Origin: Macrostomum lignano | Lineage: Eukaryota | Reading direction: 5' to 3' | NCBI GenBank assembly: GCA_002269645.1 | Contig: NIVC01004105.1 | Coordinates: forward strand, 1-60,582 | Length of the DNA stretch: 60,582 nt | Part shown: positions 13,179 through 44,841 of the stretch, piece after piece | Numbering within the stretch: position 1 is the first letter of the stretch | Layout: every line of letters starts with the position of its first letter | Position numbers and translations under genes: made by a program | The notes under the pieces: model-generated | Database searches by the model: none | What the model was told of the DNA's origin: nothing | Seen by the model: only the letters and a program-made list of their open reading frames with translations

Positions 13179-16100
13179 TCACTTCTTAGCCGCCGGCGGC
13201 GCCTTGCTGCCATAGAGAATGCGGTTCATCTGCGTGTTCTGCTCGTCCATCTTGGCGTTCGTCTTGTCTGTCTTCACCGACATTCGCTCCAGCTGCGAGT
13301 TCTGCCTGTCGATCTCGCCGCCCAGCCCCATGGCCAGCTGCTTCAGCCGGCCCATGCCATGCTCCATCTCGCCCAGGTTTTCGCTGAACGCCCTGTCGTA
13401 GGAGGTCTGCGGCTGCTGCCGCTGCTGCTGCTGCTGGTAGCCGGCGGCCCCCGTGGCTGCGGCGCCAAAGGATGCCGCGGGCTCCTGGCGGCGAACGTGG
13501 AATGGAACAGCTGCTGTGAGACTGGAGACACTCAGCATTCTCACCATTGAGACAGTCGGCAGTCTCCCCATTGAGACACTCAGCAGTCTTATCATTGAGA
13601 CACTCAGCAGTCTCCCCATTGAGACAGTCGGCAGTCTCCCCATTGAGACACTCAGCAGTCTTATCATTGAGACACTCAGCAGTCTCACCATTGAGACTCT
13701 CAGCAGTCTCCCCATTGAGACACTCAGCAGTCTCACCATTGAGACACTCAGCAGTCTCCCCATTGAGACACTCGGCAGTCTCCCCATTGAGACACTCAGC
13801 AGTCTTATCATTGAGACACTCAGCAGTCTTATCATTGAGACACTCAGCAGTCTCCCCATTGAGACACTCAGCAGTCTCCCCATTGAGACACTCAGCAGTC
13901 TCCCCATTGAGACAGTCGGCAGTCTCCCCATTGAGACACTCAGCAGTCTTATCATTGAGACACTCAGCAGTCTCCCCATTGAGACACTCAGCAGTCTCAC
14001 CATTGAGACACTCAGCAGTCTCCCCATTGAGACACTCGGCAGTCTCCCCATTGAGACACTCAGCAGTCTTATCATTGAGACACTCAGCAGTCTCCCCATT
14101 GAGACACTCAGCAGTCTTATCATTGAGACACTCAGCAGTCTCCCCATTGAGACACTCAGCAGTCTCCCATTGAGACACTCAGCAGTCTCACCATTGAGAC
14201 ACTCAGCAGTCTCCCCATTGAGACACTCAGCAGTCTCACCATTGAGACACTCAGCAGTCTCACCATTGAGACACTCAGCAGTCTCACCATTGAGACACTC
14301 AGCAGTCTCCCCATTGAGACACTCGGCAGTCTCCCCATTGAGACACTCAGCAGTCTTATCATTGAGACACTCAGCAGTCTCCCCATTGAGACACTCAGCA
14401 GTCTTATCATTGAGACACTCAGCAGTCTTATCATTGAGACACTCAGCAGTCTCCCCATTGAGACACTCAGCAGTCTTATCATTGAGACACTCAGCAGTCT
14501 CACCATTGAGACTCTCAGCAGTCTCCCCATTGAGACACTCAGCAGTCTCACCATTGAGACACTCAGCAGTCTCCCCATTGAGACACTCGGCAGTCTCCCC
14601 ATTGAGACACTCAGCAGTCTTATCATTGAGACACTCAGCAGTCTTATCATTGAGACACTCAGCAGTCTCCCCATTGAGACACTCAGCAGTCTCCCCATTG
14701 AGACACTCAGCAGTCTCCCCATTGAGACAGTCGGCAGTCTCCCCATTGAGACACTCAGCAGTCTTATCATTGAGACACTCAGCAGTCTCCCCATTGAGAC
14801 ACTCAGCAGTCTCACCATTGAGACACTCAGCAGTCTCCCCATTGAGACACTCGGCAGTCTCCCCATTGAGACACTCAGCAGTCTTATCATTGAGACACTC
14901 AGCAGTCTCCCCATTGAGACACTCAGCAGTCTCCCCATTGAGACACTCAGCAGTCTCACCATTGAGACACTCAGCAGTCTCCCCATTGAGACACTCAGCA
15001 GTCTCACCATTGAGACACTCAGCAGTCTCACCATTGAGACACTCGGCAGTCTCCCCATTGAGACACTCAGCAGTCTTATCATTGAGACACTCAGCAGTCT
15101 CCCCATTGAGACACTCAGCAGTCTCCCCATTGAGACACTCAGCAGTCTTATCATTGAGACACTCAGCAGTCTCCCCATTGAGACACTCAGCAGTCTTATC
15201 ATTGAGACACTCAGCAGTCTCCCCATTGAGACACTCAGCAGTCTCACCATTGAGACACTCAGCAGTCTCCCCATTGAGACACTCAGCAGTCTCCCCATTG
15301 AGACACTCAGCAGTCTCCCCATTGAGACACTCAGCAGTCTCACCATTGAGACACTCAGCAGTCTCCCCATTGAGACACTCAGCAGTCTCACCATTGAGAC
15401 ACTCAGCAGTCTCACCATTGAGACACTCAGCAGTCTCCCCATTGAGACACTCAGCAGTCTTATCATTGAGACACTCAGCAGTCTCCCCATTGAGACACTC
15501 AGCAGTCTCCCCATTGAGACACTCAGCAGTCTCCCCATTGAGACACTCAGCAGTCTCCCCATTGAGACACTCAGCAGTCTTATCATTGAGACACTCAGCA
15601 GTCTCCCCATTGAGACACTCAGCAGTCTCACCATTGAGACACTCAGCAGTCTCCCCATTGAGACACTCAGCAGTCTCACCATTGCGACACTCAGCAGTCT
15701 CCCCATTGAGACACTCAGCAGTCTCACCATTGAGACACTCGGCAGTCTCCCCATTGAGACACTCAGCAGTCTCACCATTGAGACACTCAGCAGTCTCCCC
15801 ATTGAGACACTCAGCAGTCTCCCCATTGAGACACTCAGCAGTCTCCCCATTGAGACACTCAGCAGTCTCACCATTGAGACACTCAGCAGTCTCACCATTG
15901 AGACACTCAGCAGTCTCACCATTGAGACACTCGGCAGTCTCCCCATTGAGACACTCAGCAGTCTCACCATTGAGACACTCAGCAGTCTCCCCATTGAGAC
16001 ACTCAGCAGTCTCCCCATTGAGACACTCAGCAGTCTTATCATTGAGACACTCAGCAGTCTCCCCATTGAGACACTCAGCAGTCTCCCCATTGAGACACTC

Positions 16101-17814
16101 AGCAGTCTCCCCATTGAGACACTCAGCAGTCTTATCATTGAGACACTCAGCAGTCTCACCATTGAGACACTCAGCAGTCTCCCCATTGAGACACTCAGCA
16201 GTCTCACCATTGAGACACTCAGCAGTCTCCCCATTGAGACACTCAGCAGTCTCCCCATTGAGACACTCAGCAGTCTCACCATTGAGACACTCAGCAGTCT
16301 CACCACAGGGACACTCAGCATTCTCACCCCCATAGACACTCAGCAGTCTCACCACAGGGACACTCAGCATTCTCACCCCCATAGACACTCAGCAGTCTCG
16401 CCAGAAACCCAAATCTCACCTGGGACACTAATAAATTTCAATTAGAGACACAGGAAACCCAAAATCTCAAAGTCCCCAAAATTCACCTGGGCAGCGACTC
16501 TCCTGGCCTCGGCGGTGGAGCTGACGGCCATGGCCTTGTCCAGGCTGGCGCCGGCGGGCTCGTACTGCTGCGCTGGCTGCTGGCGCTTCTTGGCCGAGTC
16601 GCCGCGGAACCAGTTCTTGACGCCGCCGAACATCGAGCTCAGGCTATTGATGTGGCCCTGCGATTCCTTCTGGACGGCCTCGATGTGGTCCAGCTTCTCC
16701 TCTGTTCGGTTCAGCACCTCGCCCTGCCTGACCAGCTCTTGGGCGGTGTCCACGCCCATGCTCTCGCTGCTGTACATTGACTGAAGAGCCCGCCGTTGCG
16801 TCTCCAGCTGCCGGCTCTGCGAGGCCTGCAAGCCGGCATCAAAGGTGCACAAGCACATGTAATTTGAGTCTGCAGTGTTTAACTTCTCCTAGTCTCCCAT
16901 ACTGATACATTCCCCAATCACAGAAGCCTCCCCCAGTCTTTTCCTCCCTTCGCTCCGGTCGTCTTATTCTCTGTCGATTTAAAACTCGTCTCAACTCTTA
17001 TTTTTGTCCCTTGCCTGTCCCTCTCCTAGTCTTATCTACTTCCAGACTCCCTCCGCCCCATCTGCCCCAGACTCCCTCCACCCCATCTGCCCCAGACTCC
17101 CTCCACCCTATCTGCCCCAGACTCCCTCCACCCCATCTGCCCCAGTCTCCCTCCACCCCATCTGCCCCAGTCTCCCTCCACCCCATCTGCCCCAGTCTCC
17201 CTCCACCCCATCTGCCCAGTCTCCCTTCACCCCATCTGCCCCAGTCTCCCTCCACCCCATCTGCCCAGTCTCCCTTCACCCCATCTGCCCCAGTCTCCCT
17301 CCACCCCATCTGCCCCAGACTCCCTCCACCCCATCTGCCCCAGACTCCCTCCACCCCATCTGCCCCAGTCTCCCTCCACCCCATCTGCCCCAGTCTCCCT
17401 CCACCCCATCTGCCCCAGTCTCCCTCCACCCCATCTGCCCCAGTCTCCCTCCACCCCATCTGCCCAGTCTCCCTTCACCCCATCTGCCCCAGTCTCCCTC
17501 TACCCCATCTGCCCCAGACTCCCTCCACCCCATCTGCCCCAGACTCCCTCCACCCCATCTGCCCCAGACTCCCTCCACCCCATCTGCCCCAGACTCCCCC
17601 CACCCCATCCTCCGCGGTGACAGCAGCCGCTCACCTGCACCTGCTGCTGCACAGTCGACCGGCCTTCATAGCCGTAGCCGCCGCCAGGATTGTAGGAGCC
17701 GAAGCTGCCAGCCTGCCGGTCCTGCCCAGTCTCGAACGGGTTCCGGCCGCCGCCGCCGCCAAGACTAAAGGGATTTTTATCCTCTGTGTAGAACGGGTTT
17801 CTGCTGTCAGACAT
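13179..17814 (-). CDS. SNAP29: Synaptosomal-associated protein 29 (Qbc SNARE), 3 exons, ~274 aa
   Basis: Exons 17814-17635, 16825-16487, 13484-13179, all phase 0 with GT..AG. N-terminal NPF motifs. SNARE 1: RRALQSMYSSESMGVDTAQELVRQGEVLNRTEEKLD...HINSLSSMFGG. SNARE 2: ENLGEMEHGMGRLKQLAMGLGGEIDRQNSQLERM. Confidence 0.93.
13525..16400. repeat. 24-bp minisatellite (ATTGAGACACTCAGCAGTCTCCCC and variants), ~120 copies, in SNAP29 intron 2
   Basis: Direct reading; gives 8-aa periodic spurious ORFs in several frames. Confidence 0.97.
17040..17610. repeat. 25-bp G/C-skewed minisatellite (ACTCCCTCCACCCCATCTGCCCCAG), ~22 copies, in SNAP29 intron 1
   Basis: Direct reading; the sense strand carries GGGG, GGGG and GGG runs in each unit. 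Confidence 0.95.
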
Positions 17815-18189
17815 TCCTACAGCTTGTCGCTGCAAATGGCGGCAGGAGAGAAAACTATGGGGGCTCTGCCAGCAAATATCTCTGCTTTAAAAGTAGGCTC
17901 ACACCAGAACTGCGGTAGCCCCCGCTAGTGTACATTGCCCTCTGTCTCCAGAATATCTCTGCAAACAACCTCTTTACGAAATACTGGTCTATTCTGATTC
18001 TAATAATAGCACAGACGTGCTCAGTGACTAAGCCTTTCCCTACCCTGCATGACTAACAACCCCATATAAAAAATTCTAATAAGTCTACGCAGCTTTCAAA
18101 AATATGAATCATCTCAATATTAGTCAGACTCCAAACTGACTTGATGAAGCTTTAATTACGAGAAGCCCAGAAGCTGCTGCGATTGCAAT

Positions 18190-18540
18190 TTAAATAAAAC
18201 AAAACTTGCTAAGGAGACAAAGGGGGTCAAACAGGGTGGAAATGCACGCCAAGGCTCTCGCCTGTAGCTGGCGCATAACAGGAGTTTTCTGCAATCAAAG
18301 CACTGACTCGCGGATACGCGTGACCGTGGGAGCCTCGGCTTGCCCATGAGACAGCCAGGAGGCAGGCGTGCCCCACACGGGCATCTACACAGGCTCAAGC
18401 TCACACAGAGTGTACAGCGCCCCCTGCCGACTACTTATTTCCAAGAGAACGAACGCCAACTTAATAAGGCCGTGTGCGGACTCGAACCCGGGTAACCTTT
18501 ACACGGGAGTCGGAGGCGTTGCAGCCGAGCTGCTCGGCCC
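18190..18540 (-). mobile_element. Putative tRNA-derived SINE (tRNA-like head 18540-18468 plus body)
   Basis: Minus strand GGGCCGAGCAGCTCGGCTGC...CCCGGGTTCGAGTCCGCACACGGCC has a perfect B box (GGTTCGAGTCC) and acceptor-stem-like ends, but the anticodon stem does not pair. A GC-rich body and an AT-rich tail follow. The 3' boundary is approximate. Confidence 0.5.
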
Positions 18541-18649
18541 TCTGAGCAGGAAGCACTTTTCTTTTTCTTCAATTGGATCGGAATGCCAAAATTTTAACAA
18601 TGTCTAAACTTAACTTCCTAATTAGAGATAACATCATCCAGTTCTTTAA

Positions 18650-19315
18650 TCCATATATCGAGATCCCATTATCCAGGTGTTAATCCCTAATGGAATATCC
18701 CATCATCCATATACTAAAAATGGTCCAGGTCTAAATCTCTAATTGAATATCCCATAGTCCAGGTGTTAATCCCTAGTTGACTATCCTATCATATGGGTGC
18801 TAAATCAGTAATTACAGATCTCATAATCCAGGTGTTAAACACCTTAATTAAATATCCTATACTCCAGGTCTTAATCCCTAATTGAATATCCCATCATCCA
18901 GGTGTTAAATCCCTAATTACAGATCCCATCATCCAGGTGTTATATCCCTAATTACAGATCCCATCATCCAGGTGTTAAATCCCTAATTACAGATCCCATC
19001 ATCCAGGTGTTAAATCCCTAATTACAGATCCCATCATTCAGGTGTTATATCCCTAATTACAGATCCCATCATCCAGGTGTTAAATCCCTAATTACAGATC
19101 CCATCATCCAGGTGTTAAATCCCTAATTACAGATCCCATCATTCAGGTGTTATATCCCTAATTACAGATCCCATCATCCAGGTGTTAAATCCCTAATTAC
19201 AGATCCCATCATCCAGGTGTTAAATCCCTAATTACAGATCCCATCATCCAGGTATCAATCCCTATTCAATACCCATCATCCAGGTATCAATCCCTATTCA
19301 ATATCCCATCATCGA
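18650..19315. repeat. 35-bp minisatellite (GATCCCATCATCCAGGTGTTAAATCCCTAATTACA), DHPS-SNAP29 spacer
   Basis: About 10 clean copies at ~18890-19250 with degenerate copies on both sides. Confidence 0.92.
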
Positions 19316-19474
19316 GGTTTTGGGATACTGAATGACTGACACATCAAGCCTCTGAAGTTGCAAAATGCTTCGCGCAAATCTCTCCGATATAAACAAAGGT
19401 CACTCGGCACTGTGCAGCGACCCAGCCAGAAGGCCAGCTACATGAAAGCCAGGTCAGTGAGCAGTTCTAAGAGG

Positions 19475-22400
19475 TCATTTGTCTGCCCTGCCAGCCAGCC
19501 GCTTAGCGAAGGTCTGCGCCACGATGAGCGGGAAGGCCAGCGTGGCGTCCGAGTAGACCTTCACAGGCCGCGCGTCCAGCCGGATTTTGCCCCAGCTGAC
19601 GGCCTCGTCGGGCCTGGCGCCGGAGTCGCTGCCATCGAACTCCTGGCCGGTGTTGACGAACACGGCAAAGTTGGCCCCGTTGCGCATGAGGTTGGCATTG
19701 CAGGTGTGGTGCTTCACGACCCCGCCGCCCAGAACTATCATGCCGGTGTTGCGGGCGAACACCGCCTGGCTGTTCACCAGCCGGATGTCCTCGATGGCGT
19801 CCAGGACGAGGCCGGGACAGCGGTAGCTGTGAAAGTACAGCACGTCACCGCACGCGCCGTCTGTGATGGAAGGGCAGAACACAGGGATGCCGTTTCGGTG
19901 GCACCAGTAGAGCACCGACTCGGGGTTGTTGATCTCTCTGGAAGAATATATTGACATTTTGCGTTTTGGCTACTTAAACAGTAGTTCGATAGCACTAATC
20001 ACCATGAGTCAATTAATAGTCTCACCCATGAGTCACTCAATAGTCTCACCCATGAGTCACTCATTAGTCTCACCCATGAGTCACTCATTAGTCTCACCCA
20101 TGAAACACTCAATAGTCTCACCCATGAGTCAATTAATAGTCTCACCCATGAGTCACTCAATAGTCTCACCCATGAGTCACTCAATAGTCTCACCCATGAG
20201 TCACTCAATAGTCTCACCCATGAGTCACTCAATAGTCTCACCCATGAGTCACTCAATAGTCTCACCCATGAGTCACTCATTAGTCTCACCCATGAGTCAC
20301 TCATTAGTCTCACCCATGAGACACTCAATAGTCTCACCCATAAGACAATCAATAGTCTCACCCATGAGACACTCAATAGTCTGACCCATGAGCCACTCAA
20401 TAGTCTCACCCATAAGACAATCAATAGTCTCACCCATAAGACACAATATTCTCACCCACACTCAAAAGTCTCACCCATGAGACACTCAATAGTCTCACCC
20501 ATGAGTCACTCACTAGTCTCACCCATGAGACACTCAATAGTCTCACCCATAAGACAATCAATAGTCTCACCCATGAGACACTCAATAGTCTGACCCATGA
20601 GCCACTCAATAGTCTCACCCATGAGACAATCAATAGGCTCACCCATAAGACACAATATTCTCACCCACACTCAAAAGTCTCACCCATGAGACAATCAATA
20701 TTCTCACGCATGGGGTAGAAATAAATAGAGATCAGAGGACAGGAATGCATAAAGGACTCAGCACAGGAATGCATAAAGGACTCAGGACAGGAATGCATGG
20801 AGGACTCAGGACAGGAATGCATAACGGACTCAGGACAGGAATGCATGGAGGACTCAGGACAGGAATGCATGGAGGACTCAGGACAGGAATGCATAAAGGA
20901 CTCAGGACAGGAATGCATAACGGACTCAGGACAGGAATGCATGGAGGACTCAGGACAGGAATGCATAAAGGACTCAGGACAGGAATGTATGGAGGACTCA
21001 GGACAGGAATGCATAAAGGACTCAGGACAGGAATGCATAACGGACTCAGGACAGGAATGCATAAAGGACTCAGGACAGGAATGCATAAAGGACTCAGGAC
21101 AGGAATGCATAACGGACTCAGGACAGGAATGCATAACGGACTCAGGACAGGAATGCATGGAGGACTCAGGACAGGAATGCATGGAGGACTCAGGACAGGA
21201 ATGCATAAAGGACCCAGGACAGGAATGCATGAAGGACTCAGGACAGGAATGCATGAAGGACTCAGGACAGGAATGCATGGAGGACTCAGGACAGGAATGC
21301 ATGGAGGACTCAGGACAGGAATGCATAAAGGACTCAGGACAGGAATGCATAACGGACTCAGGACAGGAATGCATGGAGGACTCAGGACAGGAATGCATAA
21401 AGGACTCAGGACAGGAATGCATAACGGACTCAGGACAGGAATGCATGGAGGACTCAGGACAGGAATGCATAAAGGACTCAGGACAGGAATGCATAAAGGA
21501 CTCAGGACAGGAATGTATGGAGGACTCAGGACAGGAATGCATAAAGGACTCAGGACAGGAATGCATAACGGACTCAGGACAGGAATGCATAAAGGACTCA
21601 GGACAGGAATGCATAAAGGACTCAGGACAGGAATGCATAACGGACTCAGGACAGGAATGCATAACGGACTCAGGACAGGAATGCATAACGGACTCAGGAC
21701 AGGAATGCATGGAGGACTCAGGACAGGAATGCATGGAGGACTCAGGACAGGAATGCATAAAGGACCCAGGACAGGAATGCATGAAGGACTCAGGACAGGA
21801 ATGCATGAAGGACTCAGGACAGGAATGCATGGAGGACTCAGGACAGGAATGCATGGAGGACTCAGGACAGGAATGCATGGAGGACTCAGGACAGGAATGC
21901 ATAAAGGACTCAGGACAGGAATGCATAACGGACTCAGGACAGGAATGCATAACGGACTCAGGACAGGAATACATAAAGGACTCAGGACAGGAATGCATAA
22001 AGGACTCAGGACAGGAATGCATATAGGACTCAGGACAGGAATGCATAAAGGACTCAGAACAGGAATGCATAAAGGACTCAGGACAGGAATGCATAAGGAC
22101 TCAGGACAGGAATACATAAAGGACTCAGGACAGGAATACATAAAGGACTCAGGACAGGAATGCATAACGGACTCAGGACAGGAATGCATAAAGGACTCAG
22201 GACAGGAATGCATAAGGACTCAGGACAGGAATGCATGGAGGACTCAGGACAGGAATGCATAAGGACTCAGGACAGGAATGCATGGAGGACTCAGGACAGG
22301 AATGCATAAGGACTCAGGACAGGAATGCATGGAGGACTCAGGACAGGAACGCACGCAAGTCTCATTTAAGAAGAGCCCCACCTGCCTAGGCGGTGAATGA

Positions 22401-24303
22401 GCTTAGATGGAGTCCAGTTGATTTTCTGCTCATTCTGCTCAGCCAGCATGGCGTCAAGGATGGGCACCAGCCACGACTCGAACGCGCAGTAGTTCTTGTT
22501 CGGCACCAGCAGGTTGCCGATCCGGTTGATGCCGGCCTGACGCAGCTGCGCGCCCGGCCAGCGATGGAAGTCGCCGATGTAGGTTGGGTGCATGCACTTG
22601 ATGAGGTCCTCCTCCACGGCGCCGCCGGTGGTGACGAGCACGTCAACCAGGTTGTGCTCGACCAGGTAGCGAATTGACTCGCGCACGCCGCTGGAGATCA
22701 TGTTGGACGTGAAGGCCAAGAATATGGTGCAGTTCGTGCGGGCCCGGCCGTATGGATTCGGGTTGGACACCTCCAAGTCTCCATTGGCGGTTGCGGCACC
22801 CGCGGCTTCCTCCGGCTTGGCGAACTTGCAGTCGAGCATTCGGTTGATTTCGTCTATGGCCAGCGACAGGTTGGTGCCCTGCGGGGTGAATCAACCGTAT
22901 CTACCTGCCGATCTACAGTATCTACCTGCCGATCTATTTACAGTATCTAACTGCCAATCTACAGTATCTAACTGCCGATCTATCTACAGTATCTAACTGC
23001 CGATCTATCTACAGTATCTAACTGCCACTCTACAGTATCTAACTGCCGATCTATCTACAGTATCTACCTGCCGATCTACAGTATCTACCTGCCGATCTAC
23101 AGTATCTACCTGCTGATCTACAGTATCTACCTGCCGATCTATTTACAGTATCTAACTGCCAAACTACAGTATCTAACTGCCGATCTACAGTATCTACCTG
23201 CCGATCTACAGTATCTACCTGCCGATCTACGGTATCTAACTGCCGATCTATCTACAGTATCTAACTGCCGATCTACAGTATCTACCTGCCGATCTACAGT
23301 ATCTACCTGCTGATCTACAGTATCTACCTGCCGATCTATTTACAGTATCTAACTGCCGATCTATCTACAGTATCTAACTGCCGATCTACAGTATCTACCT
23401 GCCGATCTACGGTATCTAACTGCCGATCTATCTACAGTATCTAACTGCCGATCTACAGTATCTAACTGCCGATCTACAGTATCTACCTGCCGATCTACAG
23501 TATCTACCTGCCGATCTATTTACAGTATCTAACTGCCAATCTACAGTATCTAACTGCCGATCTACAGTATCTAACTGCCGATCTACAGTATCTACCTGCC
23601 GATCTACAGTATCTACCTGCCGATCTATTTACAGTATCTAACTGCCAATCTACAGTATCTAACTGCCGATCTATCTACAGTATCTAACTGCCGATCTACT
23701 GTATCTAACTGCCGATCTACGGTATCTAACTGCCGATCTATCTACAATATGCAACTGAAGATATATACAGCATCTAAATGCTGATCTACTTTATCTTCTA
23801 CAGTATCCAACTGACGATCTATCTAAAGTTTCCTTCTATACTGTTTTATCGAATCTAATTGATCTACAGTTCTTACAGATCTGCAGCATCTAACTACTGA
23901 TCTGCAGCATCTAACTACTGATCTGCAGCATCTAACTACTGAACTGCAGCATCTAACTACTGATCTGGAGCATCTAACTACTGAACTGCAGCATCTAACT
24001 ACTGATCTGCAGCATCTAACTACTGAACTGCAGCATCTAACTATTGATCTGCAGCATCTAACTACTGATCTGCAGCATCTAACTACTGAACTGCAGCACC
24101 TACAGGGTAAATAAGCAGAAAAGGTAAACATGAAGACTTACCTGAAAGCCTGTGGTGGCAAATGATTTCATCAGTGCTTCCAGTGACAGCCCGTCAGGCG
24201 CATTGAAGTCGTGACCCTTGACCGGCGTGTCCACGTCTTCTGGCAGCTGGCCGGACTGCATCAGCACAGCCTGCTGGCTGATCTGCGGCGGCTGCTGAGA
24301 CAT
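19475..24303 (-). CDS. DHPS: Deoxyhypusine synthase, 3 exons, ~373 aa
   Basis: Exons 24303-24142, 22878-22382, 19937-19475 (phases 0, 2) total 1122 nt. Motifs [44 protein letters not shown] and [13 protein letters not shown] (catalytic Lys). Confidence 0.96.
19997..20700. repeat. 24-bp minisatellite (ATAGTCTCACCCATGAGTCACTCA) in DHPS intron 2
   Basis: Direct reading; the unit resembles the SNAP29 intron 2 repeat. Confidence 0.95.
20735..22350. repeat. 24-bp minisatellite (GGACTCAGGACAGGAATGCATAAA), ~67 copies, in DHPS intron 2
   Basis: Direct reading; variable 3-nt position (AAA/AAC/GGA/GAA). Confidence 0.96.
22897..23760. repeat. 21/25-bp minisatellite (GATCTACAGTATCTACCTGCC) in DHPS intron 1
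   Basis: Direct reading; some units carry an extra 4 nt. Confidence 0.93.
23870..24098. repeat. 21-bp minisatellite (GATCTGCAGCATCTAACTACT) in DHPS intron 1
   Basis: About 11 copies; related to the adjacent 21-bp array. Confidence 0.92.
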
Positions 24304-24444
24304 GGCTGAAGTGTCCGGGGAGTGCTTGAGAATGTACTTCTTTATCAAGTATCGCAACTGTCTTCGGTTCCAGTAAAACAATTGCTGGCAAAATACTTTA
24401 AAATATTTTAGCATCATTTTACAGTATTACAGTGAATATAGCAG

Positions 24445-24465
24445 TCGTAGTAGTAGTAGTAGTAT

Positions 24466-24524
<59 letters not shown>

Positions 24525-24585
24525 TCAGTAGTAGTATTAGTAGCAGTAGCAGTAGTAGTAGTTTTAGTAGCAGTAGTAGTAGTAA

Positions 24586-24617
<32 letters not shown>

Positions 24618-24686
24618 GTAGTAGTAGTAGTAGTAGAAGTAGTAGTAGTAGTAGTAGCAGTAGTAGTAGTGATAGTAGTAGTAGTA

Positions 24687-24719
<33 letters not shown>

Positions 24720-24734
24720 ATAGTAGTAGTAGTA

Positions 24735-24784
<50 letters not shown>

Positions 24785-24810
24785 TGTAATAGTAGTAGTA
24801 GTAGTAGTAA

Positions 24811-24876
<66 letters not shown>

Positions 24877-24900
24877 CAGTAGTAGTACTAATTGTAGTAG
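24445..24900. repeat. (AGT)n microsatellite, ~150 units, MFSD9-DHPS spacer
   Basis: Direct reading; produces poly-Leu and poly-Val spurious ORFs. Confidence 0.97.
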
Positions 24901-25356
24901 AGTATTATTTTTACTACACATTGGCATCTAGGCTCAAGAGTCCGTACTGTACCTTGCCAGGAAAGAAGGTGGGCAGCAAAGTAATAAAAAACAAGAAGTA
25001 AAAAACATTTTTAAGTATGTTTGTTTATATTTTTGTCACAACGAAAGATAAACAACGGAACATTGTGATTCTGTAGATTTTGTGCGATTCTGTGCAAAAT
25101 CAGATCAGGAAAGACAGCTGGAAGTGCGGGAAAAGCGCCTGGCACATGGAATAATGCTCATATTGGGAACCACTGAAAATCAGGAACTCAAAGGTGGATC
25201 GCATCCCTTCCTGCCGTTCCTGGTGGTTAATTAAAATTATGCTAACAGAAAATTACGATTAAAAAATCTATACAGACTACTTGCGCTTGCAATGCAGTAG
25301 GCAGGTAGCAAATTTTGTAGCTTAAAATTTCAGATAAAAACTGGGGTGAAGACTCG

Positions 25357-26687: not shown

Positions 26688-26724
<37 letters not shown>

Positions 26725-27453: not shown

Positions 27454-27506
27454 CTGAAGTTGAGGGGCGGTGGGCGAATGGCGAACGTTACGGGCAATCG
27501 TCAAGG

Positions 27507-31761: not shown

Positions 31762-31811
<50 letters not shown>

Positions 31812-31813
31812 TC

Positions 31814-31895
<82 letters not shown>

Positions 31896-32118
31896 TCAGA
31901 CAGACAGACAGACAGACAGACACACACACACACACAGACACAGACAGACACACACACAGACACACACATACACACAGACAGACACACACAGACACACAGA
32001 CAGACACACACAGACACACACACAGACACACAGACAGACACACACACACAGACAGACACACACACAGACAGACACACACACACACACACACAGACAGACA
32101 CACAGACAGACACACACA

Positions 32119-32161
<43 letters not shown>

Positions 32162-33511: not shown

Positions 33512-33552
33512 GGCGGGGCTGCAACTGCAGGACTCTGGGGCATGAGCGGCTG

Positions 33553-34801
<1,249 letters not shown>

Positions 34802-35394
34802 GCCTTAGTGTCTACTATTGCTTCTCTACGAAAAAATAGTTCAGCGACATAAAGGCAATTTTGACGTTGTTCAGGAATAACACCAAGGCTCCTATATAAT
34901 CATAACACCTGTATTTAACTGTAGCACACAAGCGTATCGAAGATTAACAGTATATATATGCAAGACAAATGCTTTCAATTAAACTTCATTCACTGAAACA
35001 TTTTGGAGGTGACAAGAAATGCAAGGAAAGAAAACTATTGGGCCACACAATTACGAAGCAGTTTGTACGTTATTGAACTACGATAAGCTGAGAATAAGGG
35101 TTGAAGGGTCATAGCATGACTGGGTTGGGTTTAAAAATGACGTTAACTTTATCTACATCACTTGACGAAATATAGTTTATATCTTCTAGTCTTTATTATC
35201 TTTGGTCATGAAACTCTGAGCATGCAAGACCATCGAGATGTTTAACGATGCTTTCGTTGAATTTCTTTATAAATATAGACTTCAAGAATGTCAGCCATTC
35301 CAGCTCGAGAATTGCAAAATTCCAAAACTTTAACTGATTTTTGTCGCTCAAATGTCACCGACAGACCTCCAGGACCTTCGGCGCGATATATCTG

Positions 35395-35449
35395 TTTGTC
35401 TGTCCCTCTACCTGTCTGTCCGCCTATCTGTCTACCTGTCGGTCGGTCG

Positions 35450-35506
<57 letters not shown>

Positions 35507-35968
35507 CCTGTCTATCTACCTGTCTCTCTGTCTGTTTATCTACCTGTCTCTCTGTCTGTCTCTCTGTCTGTCTATCTACCTGTCTCTCTGTATATCTACC
35601 TGTCTCTCTGTCTGTTTATCTACCTGTCTCTCTACCTGTCTCTCTGTCTGTCTCTCTGTCTGTCTATCTACCTGTCTCTCTGTATATCTACCTGTCTCTC
35701 TGTCTGTCTATCTACCTGTCTCTCTGTATATCTACCTGTCTCTCTGTCTGTTTATCTACCTGTCTCTCTACCTGTCTATCTATCTGTCTCTCTGTCTGTC
35801 CATCTACCTGTCTCTCTGTCTCTCTGTCTGTCTATCTACCTGTCTCTCTGTCTGTCTATCTACCTGTCTCTCTGTCTGTCTATCTACCTGTCTCTCTGTC
35901 TGTCTATCTACCTGTCTCTCTGTCTGTCTATCTACCTGTCTCTCTGTCTGTCCATCTACCTGTCTGTC
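35395..35968. repeat. Compound TCTG/TCTA/CTACCTG simple repeat downstream of RPP25L
   Basis: Direct reading. Confidence 0.92.
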
Positions 35969-36039
35969 TTTGTGAATAACTCCGATTTAGCGATTTAGAT
36001 AGACCCAAGCAAGCTCGGTGAGTCATCCATGATTTCCAA

Positions 36040-37210
36040 TTATTTCTCCTCGCCGCTTGGCGCCTCCCGCTTGGCGCTCAGTAGCAGCTTGGCGCCCTTC
36101 CTGGCCTTGACCTTGGTCACGTGACGCTTTGCCGGATTGCTGACCGGCGCGGCGCGCTGCCGGCCGGCCTCAGCTGGCAGCACGCTGCTCACGAAGTGAG
36201 CGGCAAAGTCCGAGCCGGCCGGCAGCGGACTGGCCGAGGCGGGCAGCTCCAGGCGGGACAGCAGGCAGCGAATTGCCGGGACCTCGCGGACTGCCTGCGG
36301 TGGTGACGAATAGCAACATGTGGCTGGCTGTGTAACTTGCCATTGTTGACTGGACAGGGGTATCAGATATTGCTCGCCAATGCTTGTGTTGTATTGCTCA
36401 ATCGAGTTTAAAGAGTAATGCTCACTCGTGTCTAAGGGGTATGTATCGCTCACTCGTGTCCAAAGGGTATGTATCGCTCACTCGTGTCCAAAGGGTATCT
36501 ATCGCTCACTCGTGTCCAAAGGGTATCTATCGCTCACTCGTGTCCAAAGGGTATCTATCGCTCACTCGTGTCCAAAGGGTATCTATCGCTCACTCGTGTC
36601 CAAAGGGTATCTATCGCTCACTCGTGTCCAAAGGGTATTTATCGCTCACTCGTGCTCAAAGGGTAGTTACTGCCCATTTTTCGAATCTAAAGGTATTGAA
36701 GTTGACAACAAAGGAGAAATAATGACTTGACATGACATGAAATGACTTGAAATGGACGATACAAACGAACAACGGACAGACGCAACCGACCTGCAGCCGG
36801 TCCAGCCCCGGCAGCTTCGGCTCGTAGAACTGGCGCATCTTCTGGTAGAACAGGCAGTTCGCCTGGTGCAGCTGCAGGCCGCGGCTGTCGCACCTTCGCT
36901 TGGTCATCTCCGAGCAGGAGATCGCCTTCTCCAAGGCGTCTCCGTCCCCAGTCCACAGCACCTGGTCGATCGGGTGCAGCTTCGGCTTGGACTTGACATC
37001 CGCGTCAGCGTTGCCTAGCAACTGAGCCACCGCGTAGTCGACCAGACGGCCAGCCTTGCTGCCGGGCTTCACCTGCATCAGCAGGCAGAAGCGCCGCCCG
37101 CTGTCGGCTGAATCGGCCACGCCGCTGTCCGAACTCAGCACCGGCAGCTGGCCGGGAATGTCCGGTGGCTCGCTGATGTGCACCGTCTTGCCAATGTTGT
37201 AGTGCTCCAT
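36040..37210 (-). CDS. RPP25L: Ribonuclease P subunit p25-like (Alba domain), 2 exons, ~224 aa
   Basis: Exons 37210-36791 and 36294-36040 (phase 0). MEHY start, MQVKPGSK, VLWTGDGDALEKAISCSEMTKRR, and junction GLDRLQ-AVREVPAIRCLLSR fit the RPP25/RPP25L Alba family. Confidence 0.85.
36419..36663. repeat. 28-bp minisatellite (TCGCTCACTCGTGTCCAAAGGGTATCTA), ~9 copies, in the RPP25L intron
   Basis: Direct reading. Confidence 0.93.
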
Positions 37211-37325
37211 CGAGGTGAAAAGGCTGTTGCGGAGCTGCGGACTGAGCAGAGATTTGGAGACTCCCGATTTCGAATCCGCTGAATTTCGGTGCTTAATTTA
37301 AATCTACTTGGCAACTGAGCATTCA

Positions 37326-37645
37326 CTGTCCTGTGCCCTGCCTTTTCCACTGCGGCAATTTCTGTCCCATACTGTCCTGTGCCCTGCCTTTTCCACTGCG
37401 GCAATTTCTGTGCCATACTGTCCTGTGCCCTGCCTTTTCCACTGCGGCAATTTCTGTGCCATACTGTCCTGTGCCCTGCCTTTTCCTCTGCGGCAATTTC
37501 TGTCTCATACTGTCCTGTGCCCTGCCTTTTCCACTGCGGCAATTTCTGTCCCATACTGTCCTGTGCCCTGCCTTTTCCACTGCGGCAATTTCTGTGCCAT
37601 ACTGTCCTGTGCCCTGCCTTTTCCACTGCGGCAATTTCTGTCTCA
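37326..37645. repeat. 46-bp minisatellite, 7 copies
   Basis: CTGTCCTGTGCCCTGCCTTTTCCACTGCGGCAATTTCTGTCCCATA; period 37326 to 37372. Confidence 0.95.
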
Positions 37646-38245
37646 TAATGTCCTGTCCACCGCTACATGCCTTCCTGTCCCATAATGTCCTGTCCACCGC
37701 TACATGCCTTCCTGTCTCATACTGTCCTGTCCACCGCTACATGCCTTCCTGTCCCATAATGTCCTGTCCACCGCTACATGCCTTCCTGTCTCATACTTTC
37801 CTGTCCACCGCTACATGCCTTCCTGTCTCATACTGTCCTGTCCACCGCTACAATCCTTCTTGTCTCATACTGTCCTGTCCACTGCTACAATCCTTCTTGT
37901 CTCATACTGTCCTGTCCACTGCTACAATCCATCTTGTCTCATACTGTCCTGTCCACCGCTACAATTCTTCTTGTCTCATACTGTCCTGTCGACTGCTACA
38001 ATCCTTCTTGTCTCATACTGTCCTGTCCACTGCTACAATCCATCTTGTCTCATACTGTCCTGTCCACCGCTACAATCCTTTTTGTCTCATACTGTCCTGT
38101 CCACCGCTACAATCCTTCTTGTCTCATACTGTCCTGTCCACTGCTACAATCCTTCTTGTCTCATACTGTCCTGTCCACTGCTACAATCCTTCTTGTCTCA
38201 TACTGTCCTGTCCACCGCTACAATCCATCTTGTCTCATACTGTCC
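37643..38245. repeat. 37-bp minisatellite, ~16 copies, abutting the 46-bp array
   Basis: TCATACTGTCCTGTCCACCGCTACA(TG/AT)CCTTC(C/T)TGTC; period 37651 to 37688. Confidence 0.93.
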
Positions 38246-39150
38246 CTTTCACCACTACAATCTCATCAGTGATATTGTCCAATACTTAGCTAAAGTTGCA
38301 GAACAATAAAAAACGCAGAGCCCAGCAAGGTGCAAGAGTTGGTGCCAATCTGTCTGAATATATTCCAAGATACTAAAAGCTAAACTCGTATGCAAGGGCA
38401 GGAAAAGAAATGAAATAAAATATTTAATTAGCAAAATAAGCAGACGCAGCATTGGGGAAACCAACTGGCGGCGGATGCAGCTTTCCAATCGGTTTGCAGA
38501 ATCCGGCAGTCAGCTGATCATGAGAGAGAGCCAGAGTCAGCAATAGTGTGTGCGCCAACAGCGGATTACAGGTAAAGGATTAAGCCTAATTAAAAGCATC
38601 ATATCTCAAGACGTATACAATACATTTAGTTTATAAACAGATTAAGGCAGCAAGTATCCCAAACTGATGTGCGCAGGTAATGGAAAGTTTAGTAAGCTGA
38701 TTGGGGCTGTTTAACCCCGAGTGCAGTCGGTGCTGAGCTCTGATATCTCTGGTGCCAAAATGTGCCAACCAATCAGCGAATCCGGCGAAGGGAACAAAGC
38801 AGGACATCAAACTGTTTATTGGCGGAGAATATGATAGGGTAATTTATAGAAATAACATGGAACAATCATGTAATCTGAGCCTTGCAGCTCAGATTCATCG
38901 ACATGGGAGCAGCAAAAAATAGAACAGCCTTCTGTCTGGCGCTGAGCTTATGAGACTACAGACCTTAAACTCGTATATAAGCTTGCCAGCGCTAAAACAG
39001 GGCTTCAATATATGCGAAATAACTGCTAATATAGTAAAATGAGTAACAGTCTGTCGCTTGTAGTCCTAGGCTCGAATCGCCCTCAGTCTGTTCCAACTTC
39101 ACCCCACATGCTAGTGCAAAGAATTGAGAGAAATTATATATTGTATTATA

Positions 39151-40415
39151 TATCCCCTGCAGTCTGACAGATCCCAATTAGTAGAATTATCCCCTGCAGT
39201 CTGACAGATCCCAATTAGTAGAATTATCCCCTGCAGTCTGACAGATCCCAATTAGTAGAATTATCCCCTGCAGTCTGACGGATCCCAAAGTAGAATTATC
39301 CCCTGCAGTCTGACAGATCCCAATTAGTAGAATTATCCCCTGCAGTCTGAAAGATCCCAATTAGTAGAATTACCAGTATCCCCTGCAGTCTGACAGATCC
39401 CAATTAGTAGAGTTATCCCCTGCAGTCTGAAAGATCCCAAAGTAGAATTATCCCCTGCAGTCTGAAAGATCCCAATTAGTAGAATTATCCCCTGCAGTCT
39501 GAAAGATCCCAAAGTAGAATTATCCCCTGCAGTCTGAAAGATCCCAAAGTAGAATTATCCCCTGCAGTCTGAAAGATCCCAAAGTAGAATTATCCCCTGC
39601 AGTCTGAAAGATCCCAAAGTAGAATTATCCCCTGCAGTCTGAAAGATCCCAATTAGTAGAATTATCCCCTGCAGTCTGAAAGATCCCAAAGTAGAATTAT
39701 CCCCTGCAGTCTGAAAGATCCCAATTAGTAGAATTATCCCCTGCAGTCTGACAGATCCCAATTAGTAGAATTATCCCCTGCAGTCTGAAAGATCCCAAAG
39801 TAGAATTATCCCCTGCAGTCTGAAAGATCCCAATTAGTAGAATTATCCCCTGCAGTCTGACAGATCCCAATTAGTAGAATTATCCCCTGCAGTCTGACAG
39901 ATCCCAAAGTAGAATTATCCCCTGCAGTATGAGAGATCCCAAAGTAGAATTATCCCCTGCAGTCTGACAGATCCCAATTAGTAGAATTATCCCCTGCAGT
40001 CTGACAGATCCCAAAGTAGAATTATCCCCTGCAGTCTGAAAGATCCCAATTAGTAGAATTATCCCCTGCAGTCTGAAAGATCCCAATTAGTAGAATTATC
40101 CCCTGCAGTCTGAAAGATCCCAATTAGTAGAATTATCCCCTGCAGTCTGACAGATCCCAAAGTAAAATTATTCCCTGCAGTGTGACAGATCCCAAAGTAG
40201 AATTATCCCCTGCAGTCTGAGAGATCCCAAAGTAGAATTATCCCCTGCAGTCTGAGAGATCCCAAAGTAAAATTATCCCCTGCAGTGTGACAGATCCCAA
40301 AGTAGAATTATCCCCTGCAGTCTGAGAGATCCCAATTAGTAGAATTATCCCCTGCAGTCTGACAGATCCCAATTAGTAGAATTATTATCCCCTGCAGTCT
40401 GAGAGATCCCAAAGT
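39151..40415. repeat. 35/37-bp minisatellite (ATCCCCTGCAGTCTGACAGATCCCAATTAGTAGAATT), ~34 copies
   Basis: Two length variants (CAATTAGTAG / CAAAGTAG). Confidence 0.96.
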
Positions 40416-41260
40416 ATCAATAACTCCCCACAAAAAGACCAATCCAAGAACTTCAAGAACTTATTTAAGGGCTCACAGAGTCAGGCTACCCATGGAAGTC
40501 AATAATTAATCACCAAAGGTAACAATCAAATTTAAACGCGCAATTAAGACAAAAGTACAAGGATCAAGGATCAAGGATCTGCCACCGAAGTGGTTCCTTA
40601 GCGGAACTCGTAGGCATTAAGCAAAGGGATTAGGGAGAGTTACAAACACGTAAATAAACAATAAAAAGCATTTGCAATGCAAAGACAGTCTCTTAGATTT
40701 GGAATTTCAGTATAAAAAGCAAATGGGCTACAAAATGACGAAAGCAGTTACATTACAGCAAATTATACAATAGCCGTCAGCTCAGCTGAGCAATGAAAAC
40801 AGATCGATTTAACAGGTGAATAACCCCCGACCACATCGACCGCAGGTGAATAAAAAAACATACCCAATCACTTCAAAAGTTCTTCAATTCAAAAAGTAAC
40901 ATTGCAGTTCCTTCGGTTTTTCTCCAGATGAAGAAAAATCTGTCTAAAAAATCTTGTATTTCTACTTCAAGAAGAAAAGTTGATAAAGTTCTATTATTAT
41001 TATTCTTTTTATACGCGCAATATTCTGATATTTCTACTGCAAGTAGAATAGTAAAATTCTATTTTTATCATCAATTTTATAAGTGCAATATTTTCATATT
41101 TCTACTGCAAGTAGAATAGTGGATACAATTCTATTTTTACTATTAATTTTATAAGTGCAATATTCTCACATTTCTACTGCAAGTAGACATTAATGGATAT
41201 CACCAGCGAGAGTCAGTCGGCAAAATCGCCATTGGCATGCTGGGCTAGATTTCAAGTCTC

Positions 41261-43601
41261 CTACACTGACTGAGTCGGGGGCTTCGGTGGACTCTTCAAG
41301 TCGTCGACATCGTAGACGTGGAACCAGGGCGAGGCGCTGCTGTGCGTGAGGAAATAATCCTTGAAATTCTTGAAGACGCCCTGGTTAAAGGGGCTCTTGA
41401 GCACTTTCGGCATGCTGGTCTGGAAGTGAGCGTAGCGGAAAGAATTGAATCGCTCGTTGGTTGTCATGTTGACGCACAGCATCTGCCACAGCTGGCTTAG
41501 CAACAGCATAGCAACCCAGAATAGGTACAGCGAGTCGAGGCAAGCGCAGAAGAATGCCCAGGTTGAGCAGATTGGAGTCCTGGTGAACAGAGCCTTGAGC
41601 CCCACGGTGTCCCAGTCCAGGCTGCAGGAGCTGTCCGGGTGGTACACGTAGGACAGGAACATCTTCAGGAACATGGAGGTGCCGAGCACCACGCCGGTGA
41701 GGTAGCCAACGAAGGTGCGGTGGTTGGCCACGCCCACGCAGTTGTACACCCAGGGGCAGTGGTGGTCCATGCGGGCCACACAGCGGCCGCACATGTCGCA
41801 GTGCTTGGACCGGAGCGGCTTCTGGATGAGGCAGGTGGAGCAGAAGTTATCGAAGCTGGCCGATGGATCCTCGCAGGTGCGCACGATGGACTGCACGCGG
41901 GCGGTCTTGTCGATCTTCAGGAAGCCGGGGTCCCGCACAGCGCAGCGCCAATGAAAGTAGAACATGCCGGATATGACGGTGGTGAACAGCACAATGTCCC
42001 CATAGCTATTGTAGGGGAACATCAGCAGCACGCAGGTAGACGTCAGGATCACCTCGGAGCCCACGGCCAGCCCGAACGGCAGCAGCATGGGGTAGCGCAG
42101 GTCCAGGCACTTCCGGCTGAACACCAGGCGGAAGAACACGGCCAGGCCGACTAGTAGCGCCAGCTTCAGCACGTAGGAGATGGCGGCGTGGAAGATGAGG
42201 CCGGCGCAGGCCAGCAGGAGGCTGGGCACCGCCAGCATGCACCAGCGCCGGTTCTCCCTGGTGGCCAACGACCGGAAGAAGCCGCCAGCGCTAGCCGACG
42301 AGTCGCGCAGCATCCCCCGGTCCGACATCATCTCCTTGAGCCGTTCGGCCAGCCAGCGCATTTTCTTCTGCTGCAGAATCTGCACGGGCGTCTCGCCGTT
42401 GGCGTTGATGGCCGTCCAGTCGACGCCGGCGCGGTCCAGGCAGCCGAGAACGATCTGGTTGCCGCCCAGAGCAGCAAAGTGCGCCGGCGTGTTGCCGCTG
42501 TTCGGCTCGGACGCGTTCGGGTTGGCGTCAAAGGCCAGCAGCACCCGGGTGGCGTCGGGCTGCAGCACCCTCAGCGCCGTCCACATGAGGGCCGTCATGC
42601 CTTTGCAGTCGCGCAGGTTGGGGTCGGCGCCCTTGGCCAGCAGGTAGGCCAGGATGTGCGTGTAGCCGAACTGGGCAGCCAGGTGCAGGCAGGCGAGGCC
42701 CTCAGCGTCCGTCAGCAGCGGATTAGCGCCCATCCGCATCAGCAAGCAGCAGGCAGACAGGTTGCCTTGGCGACAGGCCCAGTGCAGAGGGGTGCCCTGC
42801 GGTCATCAATGGCATTTCAGATAAGAAACGTAAAGAACAATTACGGAAATTACCCGATGCAAACGGCACCAAGGCCAAGAAAGCAGCCCAGAGTCACTTG
42901 CATCACCTCAGAGTCGCTGCAGGTAACACAGGTAAAATAGGAATACGAGATGTCACGGCCGGTACAAGTCGCCTAAGAGTCAATTAAAGGCGTTTTTTAC
43001 TGTCTGCGACTCAGAACCGACTCTGGGGCGACGCAAGTGACTCTGAGCACTCCTATAATGACTCTTGGGCCATAGAGTCGTATCTAAGACTATAATAGCT
43101 AAGACAGATTATGAATGAGTAATTCCCATATCTCTCACGACCCGCTGCCCCAGACCCCCTCTCCTTCACTATCCAGACCTGCAGATCGCCACCGGGACGG
43201 TCAACAATGGCACCGTGGTTGACCAGCATCTGCATGATCTCCAGCCTGTTGTTGATGGCGGCCCAGTGCAGCGGCGAAACGCCCTGACTGTCCAGCGTGT
43301 TGGCATCGAAGCCGCTGTTGAGCAGCTCGCGAACTCTTGGCACAACTCCGTACTGACAGGCCTTGACCATGTCCCAGTTGCTGGTGTCCTGTTGTACCTG
43401 CTGCTGCTGCTGTTGTTGCTGCTGGGTCTGCATCCGGTAGGCCGGGTCCACAGGATAGGCCTTGCCCTCCGAGTCCATGGGGATCGGAGCTGCGGCAGCT
43501 GCGGCTGCGGCGGCCATGGCGCCGGGTGTCATGCCGGCGAACGGGTCGTGGCCTCCGTGGCTGTGACCGTGACCGTGATCGTGACTGTGACCGTGGTGCA
43601 T
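41261..43601 (-). CDS. ZDHHC17: Palmitoyltransferase ZDHHC17/HIP14 (ankyrin repeats + DHHC-CRD), 2 exons, ~652 aa
   Basis: Exons 43601-43179 and 42796-41261 (phase 0). Ankyrin repeats (PLHWAAINN, GGDLQ-GTPLHWACRQG, CLHLAAQFG), TM segments, and CSTCLIQKPLRSKHCDMCGRCVARMDHHCPWVYNCVG. Confidence 0.93.
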
Positions 43602-44841
43602 TGCTGACTGCCTTTGGAGCTGAATATATTGAAGATTTTTTAGCAGCTATCAATACGGCCGTGAGCACCATCTCCAATGCGACTTTACATGAATAACTGC
43701 ATTGTTAATAAAGGTAATCAATAAGTTAATAAGATGGTTACCTAAGATAAAAATGATATTAATTTTTTTACTCGCATCAATGAGCACCTCAAGGTCCTCA
43801 CCTATTGAAGTTGGCATCTTGACAAACTGCTACTTGTGACTGTGGGAACCTCAGTACATGAGTGTATGCAATACATCAACTATAGCTTGTATTTATATTG
43901 TATGACAAAGAATTAGCTTCATTCTTTGGGTTTATTCAACCCAATCACATTTGGCTTGGCTTGATAAAAAGAGCTCTTATACCAATCATTTTATTTGGCA
44001 TCCGAGTTGCTTTATATCTAAGTTGTACATTCTTAATTTTAATGTTACAAAATTTTATTACAATCTATTTTCATAGATATATTCAAGATCACTAGAATAT
44101 ACAATATAGAGATTGCAAGACAGCTTGAGTGACATTATTGCTAATCACTAGTCAAGAGAAAGAACAATGCAGTCCTAATAACTAGCAAATCAATATGACT
44201 ACTCAGCTTTTAGATCTAATGTTGCTACATTTATTATGGTTCTAGCATTCTTTACTAGTTCCATAGTAATTAGCATTTGTAGTTATAACAACTCTAGTTT
44301 AATATTTAGCTTTCATTTATACCTTTTAGAATTGCAACTTTTACTAGACCTAGAATTTAGTACACTTAGCAAAACTTATTACAAAGAAGATTCAATGCTA
44401 GAATTATTGTCATCAGACATTAATTAGTCTATAATATACATTTTTAAACATTGTTTTTTTCTAACACTTATTGTCTCTGTTTGATGTTTAGACCATACGC
44501 ATAGCAATAAATTGTCTTAAATACTTGTAACTTAAATTAAAAGTTATTGCCTAAAATGAAAACAGAAAGCATTAGCTCTGCTCAATTTGACATTTTTCTG
44601 ACCTGCAACAACTTGGGTCAGCTAATGGCCCAAAATGATAGCTATAGTGGAAGAAGTTCATGGCTAGACTGTTGGCAATGTGCAATGATCAAAAAGAACA
44701 CAACCAAGGTGAGAAGACTCAGGACCCACTGTGGTCATCTACAACTGCCTAGTAATGATAATGGCATGTACAACTTCAAGCAGATTGTGATGCAGAATGC
44801 TCAGAAGCTGGCAGCCAATGAATAGGTAGGTCACTTATGAG

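Follow-up and report, generated by a model that had tools for sequence, protein, structure and literature searches.

In the flatworm Macrostomum lignano, 30% of the genes are spliced-leader (SL) trans-spliced, and operons hold up to nine genes (Wudarski et al., 2017, PMC5730564; Ustyantsev and Berezikov, 2021, PMC8629364). The SL is 35 nt long, CGGTCTCTTACTGCGAAGACTCAATTTATTGCATG, and ends in ...UUGCAUG; its SL RNA gene has been published in the same two studies, and the top motif at the trans-splice acceptors is [T/C]TNCAG, or YTNCAG (Ustyantsev and Berezikov, 2021, PMC8629364). Repeats inflate the intercistronic distances of these operons, whose distribution has its peak near 100 bp once the repeats are subtracted (PMC5730564, PMC8629364). 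The present analysis concerns six minus-strand genes in a row, namely ZDHHC17, an Alba/RPP25-like gene (RPP25L), GBE1, an MFS transporter gene, DHPS and SNAP29. They lie on contig NIVC01004105.1 of M. lignano assembly GCA_002269645.1 (Mlig_3_7); the entire contig of 60,582 bp is called the window here. A preliminary description of this DNA had proposed that the six genes form a repeat-inflated SL trans-spliced operon of ~30 kb, transcribed from upstream of ZDHHC17. Two further genomic copies of the locus were found on NIVC01000542.1 (contig 542) and NIVC01000652.1 (contig 652). In unique sequence, contig 542 is 92–98.5% identical to the window. The presence of three copies agrees with the large-scale duplication known in this M. 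lignano line (Ustyantsev and Berezikov, 2021, PMC8629364), and the 60-kb contig, being one of three near-identical copies, may have been removed by the 2021 deduplication.

The locus is probably best explained as six SL-trans-spliced housekeeping genes lying in one or two polycistronic units of the repeat-inflated type known for the species. RNA polymerase II would read through several genes, each upstream mRNA would be cleaved and polyadenylated, and each downstream mRNA would receive the 35-nt SL at a YAG acceptor 0–31 nt before the coding frame. In the MFS transporter, the terminal AUG of the SL would itself be the start codon. The tandem repeats would be neutral expansions, filling the introns even more than the spacers.

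Compared with the published operons of M. lignano (PMC5730564, PMC8629364), the locus shows no difference in kind. It belongs to the same species and assembly, with the same 35-nt SL and YTNCAG acceptor, and it consists of conserved housekeeping genes that are same-strand neighbours separated by repeat-expanded intercistronic regions, with locus tags from that same annotation. After repeat adjustment, two of the five spacers may still be longer than the 1-kb cut-off, and six genes would fall at the rare upper end of a size range whose maximum is nine. As in the operons of Caenorhabditis elegans, unrelated housekeeping genes would share a polycistronic pre-mRNA that SL trans-splicing, coupled to 3' end formation, separates into individual mRNAs. 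C. elegans has a specialised leader, SL2, and ~100-nt spacers, whereas M. lignano has a single SL, kilobase spacers and a leader that ends in AUG and can start translation. Parasitic flatworms, surveyed recently (Mol Biol Evol 2025, PMC12582326), share several features: their SLs are single-class and end in ATG, acceptors are shared between cis- and trans-splicing, chimeric gene models occur, and intergenic distances reach several kb. Every spacer described here is nevertheless far longer than the threshold of ≤300 bp applied in that survey. Rather than the compact ~100–300 nt spacing of the C. elegans or parasitic-flatworm type, the spacers measure 1.05–4.0 kb, or 0.6–1.6 kb without tandem repeats.

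Acceptors and the start of the MFS frame

The MFS transporter gene offers the strongest evidence within the sequence for SL trans-splicing. Its frame opens directly at the acceptor (CTTCAG/GCC GGC TTA...) and runs through three further canonical exons. The first in-frame ATG in the genomic sequence falls inside the first transmembrane helix, with none before it, and in the annotated 5'-partial protein PAA48602 the alignment to the MFS fold begins at residue 12. The acceptor that the preliminary description had placed at 0 nt from the first codon is thus present, but that codon is GCC and not ATG. When the SL is joined to this exon, its terminal AUG is in frame and yields M-AGLFVAELAQ...; since no ATG precedes the first transmembrane helix, the start codon would be supplied by the SL AUG. 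Use of the flatworm SL AUG as initiator methionine is established according to Cheng et al. (2006, J Biol Chem 281:733), as that work is cited in PMC12582326, and the MFS frame, opening at its acceptor without an ATG, would be a similar case. The genome-only models of the gene in UniProt start at an internal Met and are truncated.

The GenBank annotation was built from transcripts whose ends had been set by SL-trimmed read peaks and by poly(A) reads, so annotated starts that coincide with acceptors are a second-hand reflection of experimental SL data. Its 5'-partial coding sequences open with whichever in-frame codon comes first in the annotated transcript. In four genes (ZDHHC17, RPP25L, GBE1 and SNAP29) the annotated start lies exactly after an AG, a dinucleotide with a per-position frequency of 0.06. 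Every acceptor string and distance given in the preliminary description is present in the sequence, although the annotation does not always use these sites. For RPP25L, CAACAG is found at −13, but the annotated start follows GCTCAG at −31. In GBE1, 7 nt separate TTGCAG from the ATG at 33511; the annotated start follows this acceptor in the window and in contig 542, and follows the adjacent CTGCAG in contig 652. The out-of-frame ATG noted earlier at 33543 is also there. In DHPS, the acceptor CTTCAG is followed after 2 nt by the ATG at 24303, and the GenBank coding sequence of this gene is complete from its ATG and therefore carries no transcript-start information. SNAP29 has tandem acceptors, TTGCAG (−15) and ACAAG (−8), before the ATG at 17814. 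The former, singled out in the preliminary description, precedes the annotated start in contig 652, while ACAAG is the site that the annotated start follows in the window and contig 542.

The tandem alternative acceptors of SNAP29 (TTGCAG/CGACAAG/) and GBE1 (CTGCAG/TTGCAG/) are thus chosen differently among the three copies (17822–17835 and 33518–33530; L005 393–399), and the choice alters whether the SL AUG is in frame.

Exact YTNCAG occurs at GBE1, MFS, DHPS and SNAP29, with the near forms ATTCAG at ZDHHC17 and GCTCAG at RPP25L. The motif is found ≤18 nt upstream of four of the six first codons, as against 4–6% of control ATGs in the window (binomial P ~1e-4). The location of six genes on one strand is, taken alone, weak evidence (1/32). 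The SL AUG is in frame in ZDHHC17, MFS and SNAP29 (−15 site) and out of frame in GBE1, DHPS and RPP25L, where it would begin an upstream frame, either short or overlapping; as three of six is the level expected by chance, only the MFS gene is informative in this respect. SL trans-splicing at these acceptors, as proposed at the outset, is strongly supported by the published M. lignano SL and motif, by the annotated starts at acceptors and by the need of the MFS gene for an SL AUG. We infer actual SL addition at each site from such sequence and annotation proxies, by which every downstream member of a pair counts as SL trans-spliced, and it is very probable that all six genes are.

The same YAG sites might instead be ordinary cis-splice acceptors of unannotated non-coding 5' exons. 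They do resemble the cis acceptors of the same genes, SL acceptors in flatworms are often shared with cis-splicing (PMC12582326), and a chimeric model described below reaches the SNAP29 acceptor region in cis. An origin in cis would, however, leave the MFS gene without a start codon, and it accords poorly with GenBank transcripts that begin at the sites with frames open to the 5' end ('5' partial'), as SL-trimmed boundaries produce. With four of the six sites also fitting the trans-splice motif, purely cis-spliced 5' exons are highly improbable.

Transcriptional units and spacers

In the M. lignano annotation, a transcriptional unit (TU) MligN, based on RNA-seq, holds the genes MligN.g1,.g2 and so on. 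Unrelated genes share a prefix only via one assembled transcript, so the locus tags of the three copies (Table 1) indicate TUs that span ZDHHC17-RPP25L-GBE1 and MFS-DHPS-SNAP29. No TU bridges GBE1 to MFS in any of the three copies, and this is the sole junction of the five for which that holds. The ~30-kb operon of the preliminary description is accordingly supported in two TU-linked blocks and not across the junction between them. The locus-tag numbers of the six genes were not found in the published papers or supplements searched.

DHPS and SNAP29 are also joined in UniProt A0A1I8H433, a 622-residue fusion model from a separate annotation of a different assembly. Its path leaves DHPS at a GT inside the last exon, includes a short exon at ~18541–18488 and then enters SNAP29 near the SL acceptor. 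Chimeric gene models of this kind were treated as signs of polycistronic pre-mRNA in the flatworm survey (PMC12582326). In addition, the six genes are immediate same-strand neighbours with consecutive GenBank accessions (PAA48600–PAA48605), the adjacency that the 2021 study used to define operons, and the GenBank annotation places no opposite-strand gene between them. Polycistronic transcription of at least some of the neighbours is considered quite probable; this co-transcription, together with the position and number of promoters, is what we infer from the annotation.

Spacer length was taken from stop codon to acceptor, and non-repeat values were obtained by removing only tandem repeats. 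The preliminary description had given spacers of 1.0–4.1 kb consisting largely of tandem repeats, which is roughly right: they measure 1051–4019 nt and are 36–73% tandem repeat each, 55% overall. The introns of the same genes reach 79% and the whole window 46%. Because the introns are richer in repeats than the spacers, the repeats are not specific to spacers but general to non-coding DNA here, and they are no evidence for an operon. The term 'repeat-inflated' is nonetheless correct, as total spacer lengths differ by up to 1.5 kb among the three copies while the non-repeat cores are near-constant (spacer 1 in contig 542, for example, has 2525 nt in total and 1609 nt non-repeat). Interspersed repeats were also sought in the unique parts of the spacers, with the search confined to the window, and nothing appeared beyond degenerate flanks of a tandem array. 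Operons in M. lignano were defined by a repeat-adjusted distance between transcripts of <1 kb (Ustyantsev and Berezikov, 2021, PMC8629364). Counted from stop codons, two of the junctions fall under this cut-off, one is borderline (1050 nt) and two are over.

Several observations weigh against polycistronic units. In spacers 1 and 3, ~1.6 and ~1.45 kb remain once the tandem repeats are removed, more than the 1-kb cut-off unless the 3' untranslated regions exceed 0.45–0.6 kb; the canonical signals AATAAA/ATTAAA are mostly absent after the stop codons of the six genes. The TU assembly allowed up to 1000 multi-mappings per read, and such massive multi-mapping means that repeat-derived coverage could join neighbours falsely. 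Moreover, ~60% of the trans-spliced genes of M. lignano lie outside operons (Ustyantsev and Berezikov, 2021, PMC8629364). Finally, the annotated 5' end of the MFS gene is located 7–12 nt downstream of the AG of CTTCAG in the three copies (27444 in the window; stretch 27444–27453) and not after the AG, unlike the annotated ends of neighbouring genes, which sit exactly at acceptors. This end may reflect the ragged onset of coverage in an assembled unit and not a mapped SL peak, or the offset could alternatively come from over-trimming of SL reads.

A rival reading has six independent genes with their own promoters and short outrons, each SL trans-spliced as a monocistronic transcript, the TUs and the chimera being read-through or assembly artefacts. 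The predominance of trans-spliced genes outside operons, the kilobase-scale spacers with 0.6–1.6 kb of unique sequence and the multi-mapping settings that could bridge repeats are all in keeping with this. So is the gene order in the tapeworm Spirometra, in which DHPS sits between MRP-S35 and PSMD3. The preliminary description had named synteny in related species as a check; the arrangement is not conserved in this other flatworm, and the different DHPS neighbourhood gives no sign of an ancient conserved operon. No closer Macrostomum relative was present among the protein-search matches. Yet the same gene pairs share TU prefixes in two or three separately assembled copies, DHPS and SNAP29 were also fused by an independent annotation of a different assembly, and three spacers are at or under ~1 kb without repeats, even when counted from the stop codon. 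Independence of all six genes is therefore improbable, though less so than cis-splicing.

At the other extreme, all six genes could form one ~30-kb operon with a single promoter upstream of ZDHHC17. Six genes with SL acceptors follow one another in the same orientation, the opposite strand between them carries no annotated gene, and the end of the run is marked by a plus-strand gene that converges on it and stops at 10371. TUs already bridge four of the five junctions, the longest spacer included. According to the 2021 authors, TUs are prone to interruption where intercistronic DNA is rich in repeats, and operons can hold as many as nine genes (PMC8629364); the MFS gene, which would be the first of a second unit, is itself trans-spliced. 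Against a single unit, a TU joining GBE1 to MFS is missing from three independent copies, the GBE1-MFS spacer has ~1.45 kb of unique sequence in every copy, enough for a promoter, and the annotated MFS 5' end resembles a ragged TU start. Operons of at least six genes are also rare, since 75% hold two genes and 18% three (PMC8629364). A single promoter for the six genes is thus doubtful.

Gene models, copies and surroundings

Gene models were assembled on the minus strand with GT-AG splicing, and families were checked by Pfam and PDB sequence search (Table 1). All six models are identical residue for residue to the GenBank proteins, which bears out the gene names and strand of the preliminary description, with its MFSD9 borne out as far as the MFS family. 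The best PDB matches are SNAP29 for the SNAP29 gene and RPP25 for the Alba gene; assignment of the MFS transporter is based on Pfam MFS_1 and distant PDB matches, MFSD9 being the label of the earlier reader. In a homology search, the M. lignano hypothetical protein BOX15_Mlig003792g1 showed 100% identity to the ankyrin/DHHC exon at 41261–42745(−).

Table 1. Genes, predicted SL acceptor and spacers of the six-gene locus in the window, with locus tags in the three genomic copies
Feature	Position	Strand	Details	GenBank protein	Tag, window	Tag, contig 542	Tag, contig 652
ZDHHC17 SL acceptor TATTCAG	43620..43626	-	18 nt before ATG at 43601; 5'-partial coding sequence (LQRQSAM...) opens at 43619, first base past AG
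ZDHHC17 (ankyrin + DHHC palmitoyltransferase)	41261..43619	-	exons 43619-43179, 42796-41261	PAA48605	Mlig003792g1	Mlig003792 (number not resolved)	Mlig003792g4
Spacer 1 (ZDHHC17-RPP25L)	37242..41260	-	4019 nt, 61% tandem repeat (37-, 46-, 72-bp units), 1566 nt non-repeat
RPP25/RPP25L-like Alba-domain gene	36040..37241	-	exons 37241-36791, 36294-36040	PAA48604	Mlig030989g2	without annotation	Mlig003792g5
Spacer 2 (RPP25L-GBE1)	33519..36039	-	2521 nt, 73% tandem repeat, mainly (ACAG)n on this strand, 690 nt non-repeat
GBE1 (glycogen branching enzyme)	30077..33518	-	exons 33518-33003, 32622-32178, 31588-30773, 30371-30077	PAA48603	Mlig008464g1	Mlig003792g2	Mlig017248g1
Spacer 3 (GBE1-MFS)	27454..30076	-	2623 nt, 45% tandem repeat, 1452 nt non-repeat
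MFS transporter	25357..27453	-	exons 27453-27382, 27304-27217, 27119-27076, 26454-25357	PAA48602	Mlig033358g2	Mlig033358g8	Mlig033358g11
Spacer 4 (MFS-DHPS)	24306..25356	-	1051 nt, 44% tandem repeat, (CTA)n on this strand, 585 nt non-repeat
DHPS (deoxyhypusine synthase)	19475..24305	-	exons 24305-24142, 22878-22382, 19937-19475	PAA48601	Mlig033358g4	Mlig033358g9	Mlig022200g4
Spacer 5 (DHPS-SNAP29)	17830..19474	-	1645 nt, 36% tandem repeat, 1050 nt non-repeat
SNAP29	13179..17829	-	exons 17829-17635, 16825-16487, 13484-13179	PAA48600	Mlig033358g6	Mlig033358g10	Mlig022200g3

Relative to both other copies, GBE1 in the window lacks one nucleotide in each of two C runs, located near 30951 and near 30933, 18 nt apart. 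Because of these deletions the annotated protein (PAA48603) ends early, at 30878, with 556 aa compared with 690–692 aa in the other copies; as they lie in homopolymers, uncorrected errors of long-read assembly are a likelier cause than a real pseudogene. In contig 542, the RPP25-like gene is present and 98% identical (L002 14740–17081) but has no GenBank gene call, although it is annotated in the other two copies.

The introns at 13485–16486 (SNAP29) and 19938–22381 (DHPS) consist to 95–96% of 21–24-bp tandem repeats, and a further DHPS intron (22879–24141) to 86%; SNAP29 intron 2 is 3.0 kb of 24-bp repeats. Such intron repeats are open in several frames, and as a result a mechanical list of open reading frames shows a 1069-aa 'protein' that merges the last exon of SNAP29 with an intron. 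A family of ACAG/CTGT microsatellites occurs in both orientations in an MFS intron (26625–27056), a GBE1 intron (31752–32160) and the RPP25L-GBE1 spacer (33550–34801 and 35391–35969). One of these arrays ends 31 nt before the GBE1 acceptor.

Downstream of SNAP29, a plus-strand gene of Ephrin_rec_like cysteine-rich repeats ends at 10371, convergent with SNAP29. Upstream of ZDHHC17 lies at least 10 kb of AT-rich DNA without an annotated gene. This AT-rich region, gene-free over 14 kb, contains a mariner-like transposase remnant at 47453–48418(−), a 321-aa frame with HTH_32, HTH_48 and DDE_3 domains (Tc1/mariner-type), and a minus-strand reading frame of cysteine-rich repeats follows beyond it at 57540–60333. 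Both contig ends, 1–10371(+) and 57540–60333(−), thus carry long, opposite-facing arrays of cysteine-rich Ephrin_rec_like/TNFR-type repeats. The left-end array has a 345-bp unit in 26 copies with 99% identity and the right-end array a 99-bp unit in 22 copies, and both strands of these arrays yield very long mechanical reading frames. Located 1–2 kb upstream of the ZDHHC17 acceptor, the segment 44682–45736 of the window differs in length by ~0.4 kb from its counterpart in contig 542 (L002 8305–8937), to which only one 224-bp piece within it is alignable. Rfam at the gathering threshold and a tRNA scan of the window gave no match. A search of the window with the 3' half of the M. lignano SL revealed no SL RNA gene and no retroposed SL. 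A dinoflagellate origin of the DNA, at first suggested by the GC-rich exons, the repeats and the single direction of the genes, was rejected: the dinoflagellate SL had no match in the window, and the homology search pointed to M. lignano.

Meaning for M. lignano operons

SL trans-splicing, operons and repeat-expanded spacers of M. lignano were already published in 2017 and 2021, and the locus is an ordinary instance of them. As both the phenomenon and the annotation of this locus, with its gene boundaries and multi-gene TUs, are public, nothing here is new and the discovery value is small. Should all six genes belong to one unit, which is possible but less likely than not, the locus would stand near the top of the operon size range of the species, its spacers would tolerate kilobases of repeat growth, and the MFS gene would depend obligately on the SL for its start codon.

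As a compact worked example, the locus illustrates how tandem repeats can add kilobases to the spacing of an operon while the unit stays intact, and its organisation can be recovered from a careful reading of the raw sequence. The MFS transporter would exemplify a start codon that exists only after trans-splicing, for which reason annotators working from the genome alone truncate the gene or mark it as partial.

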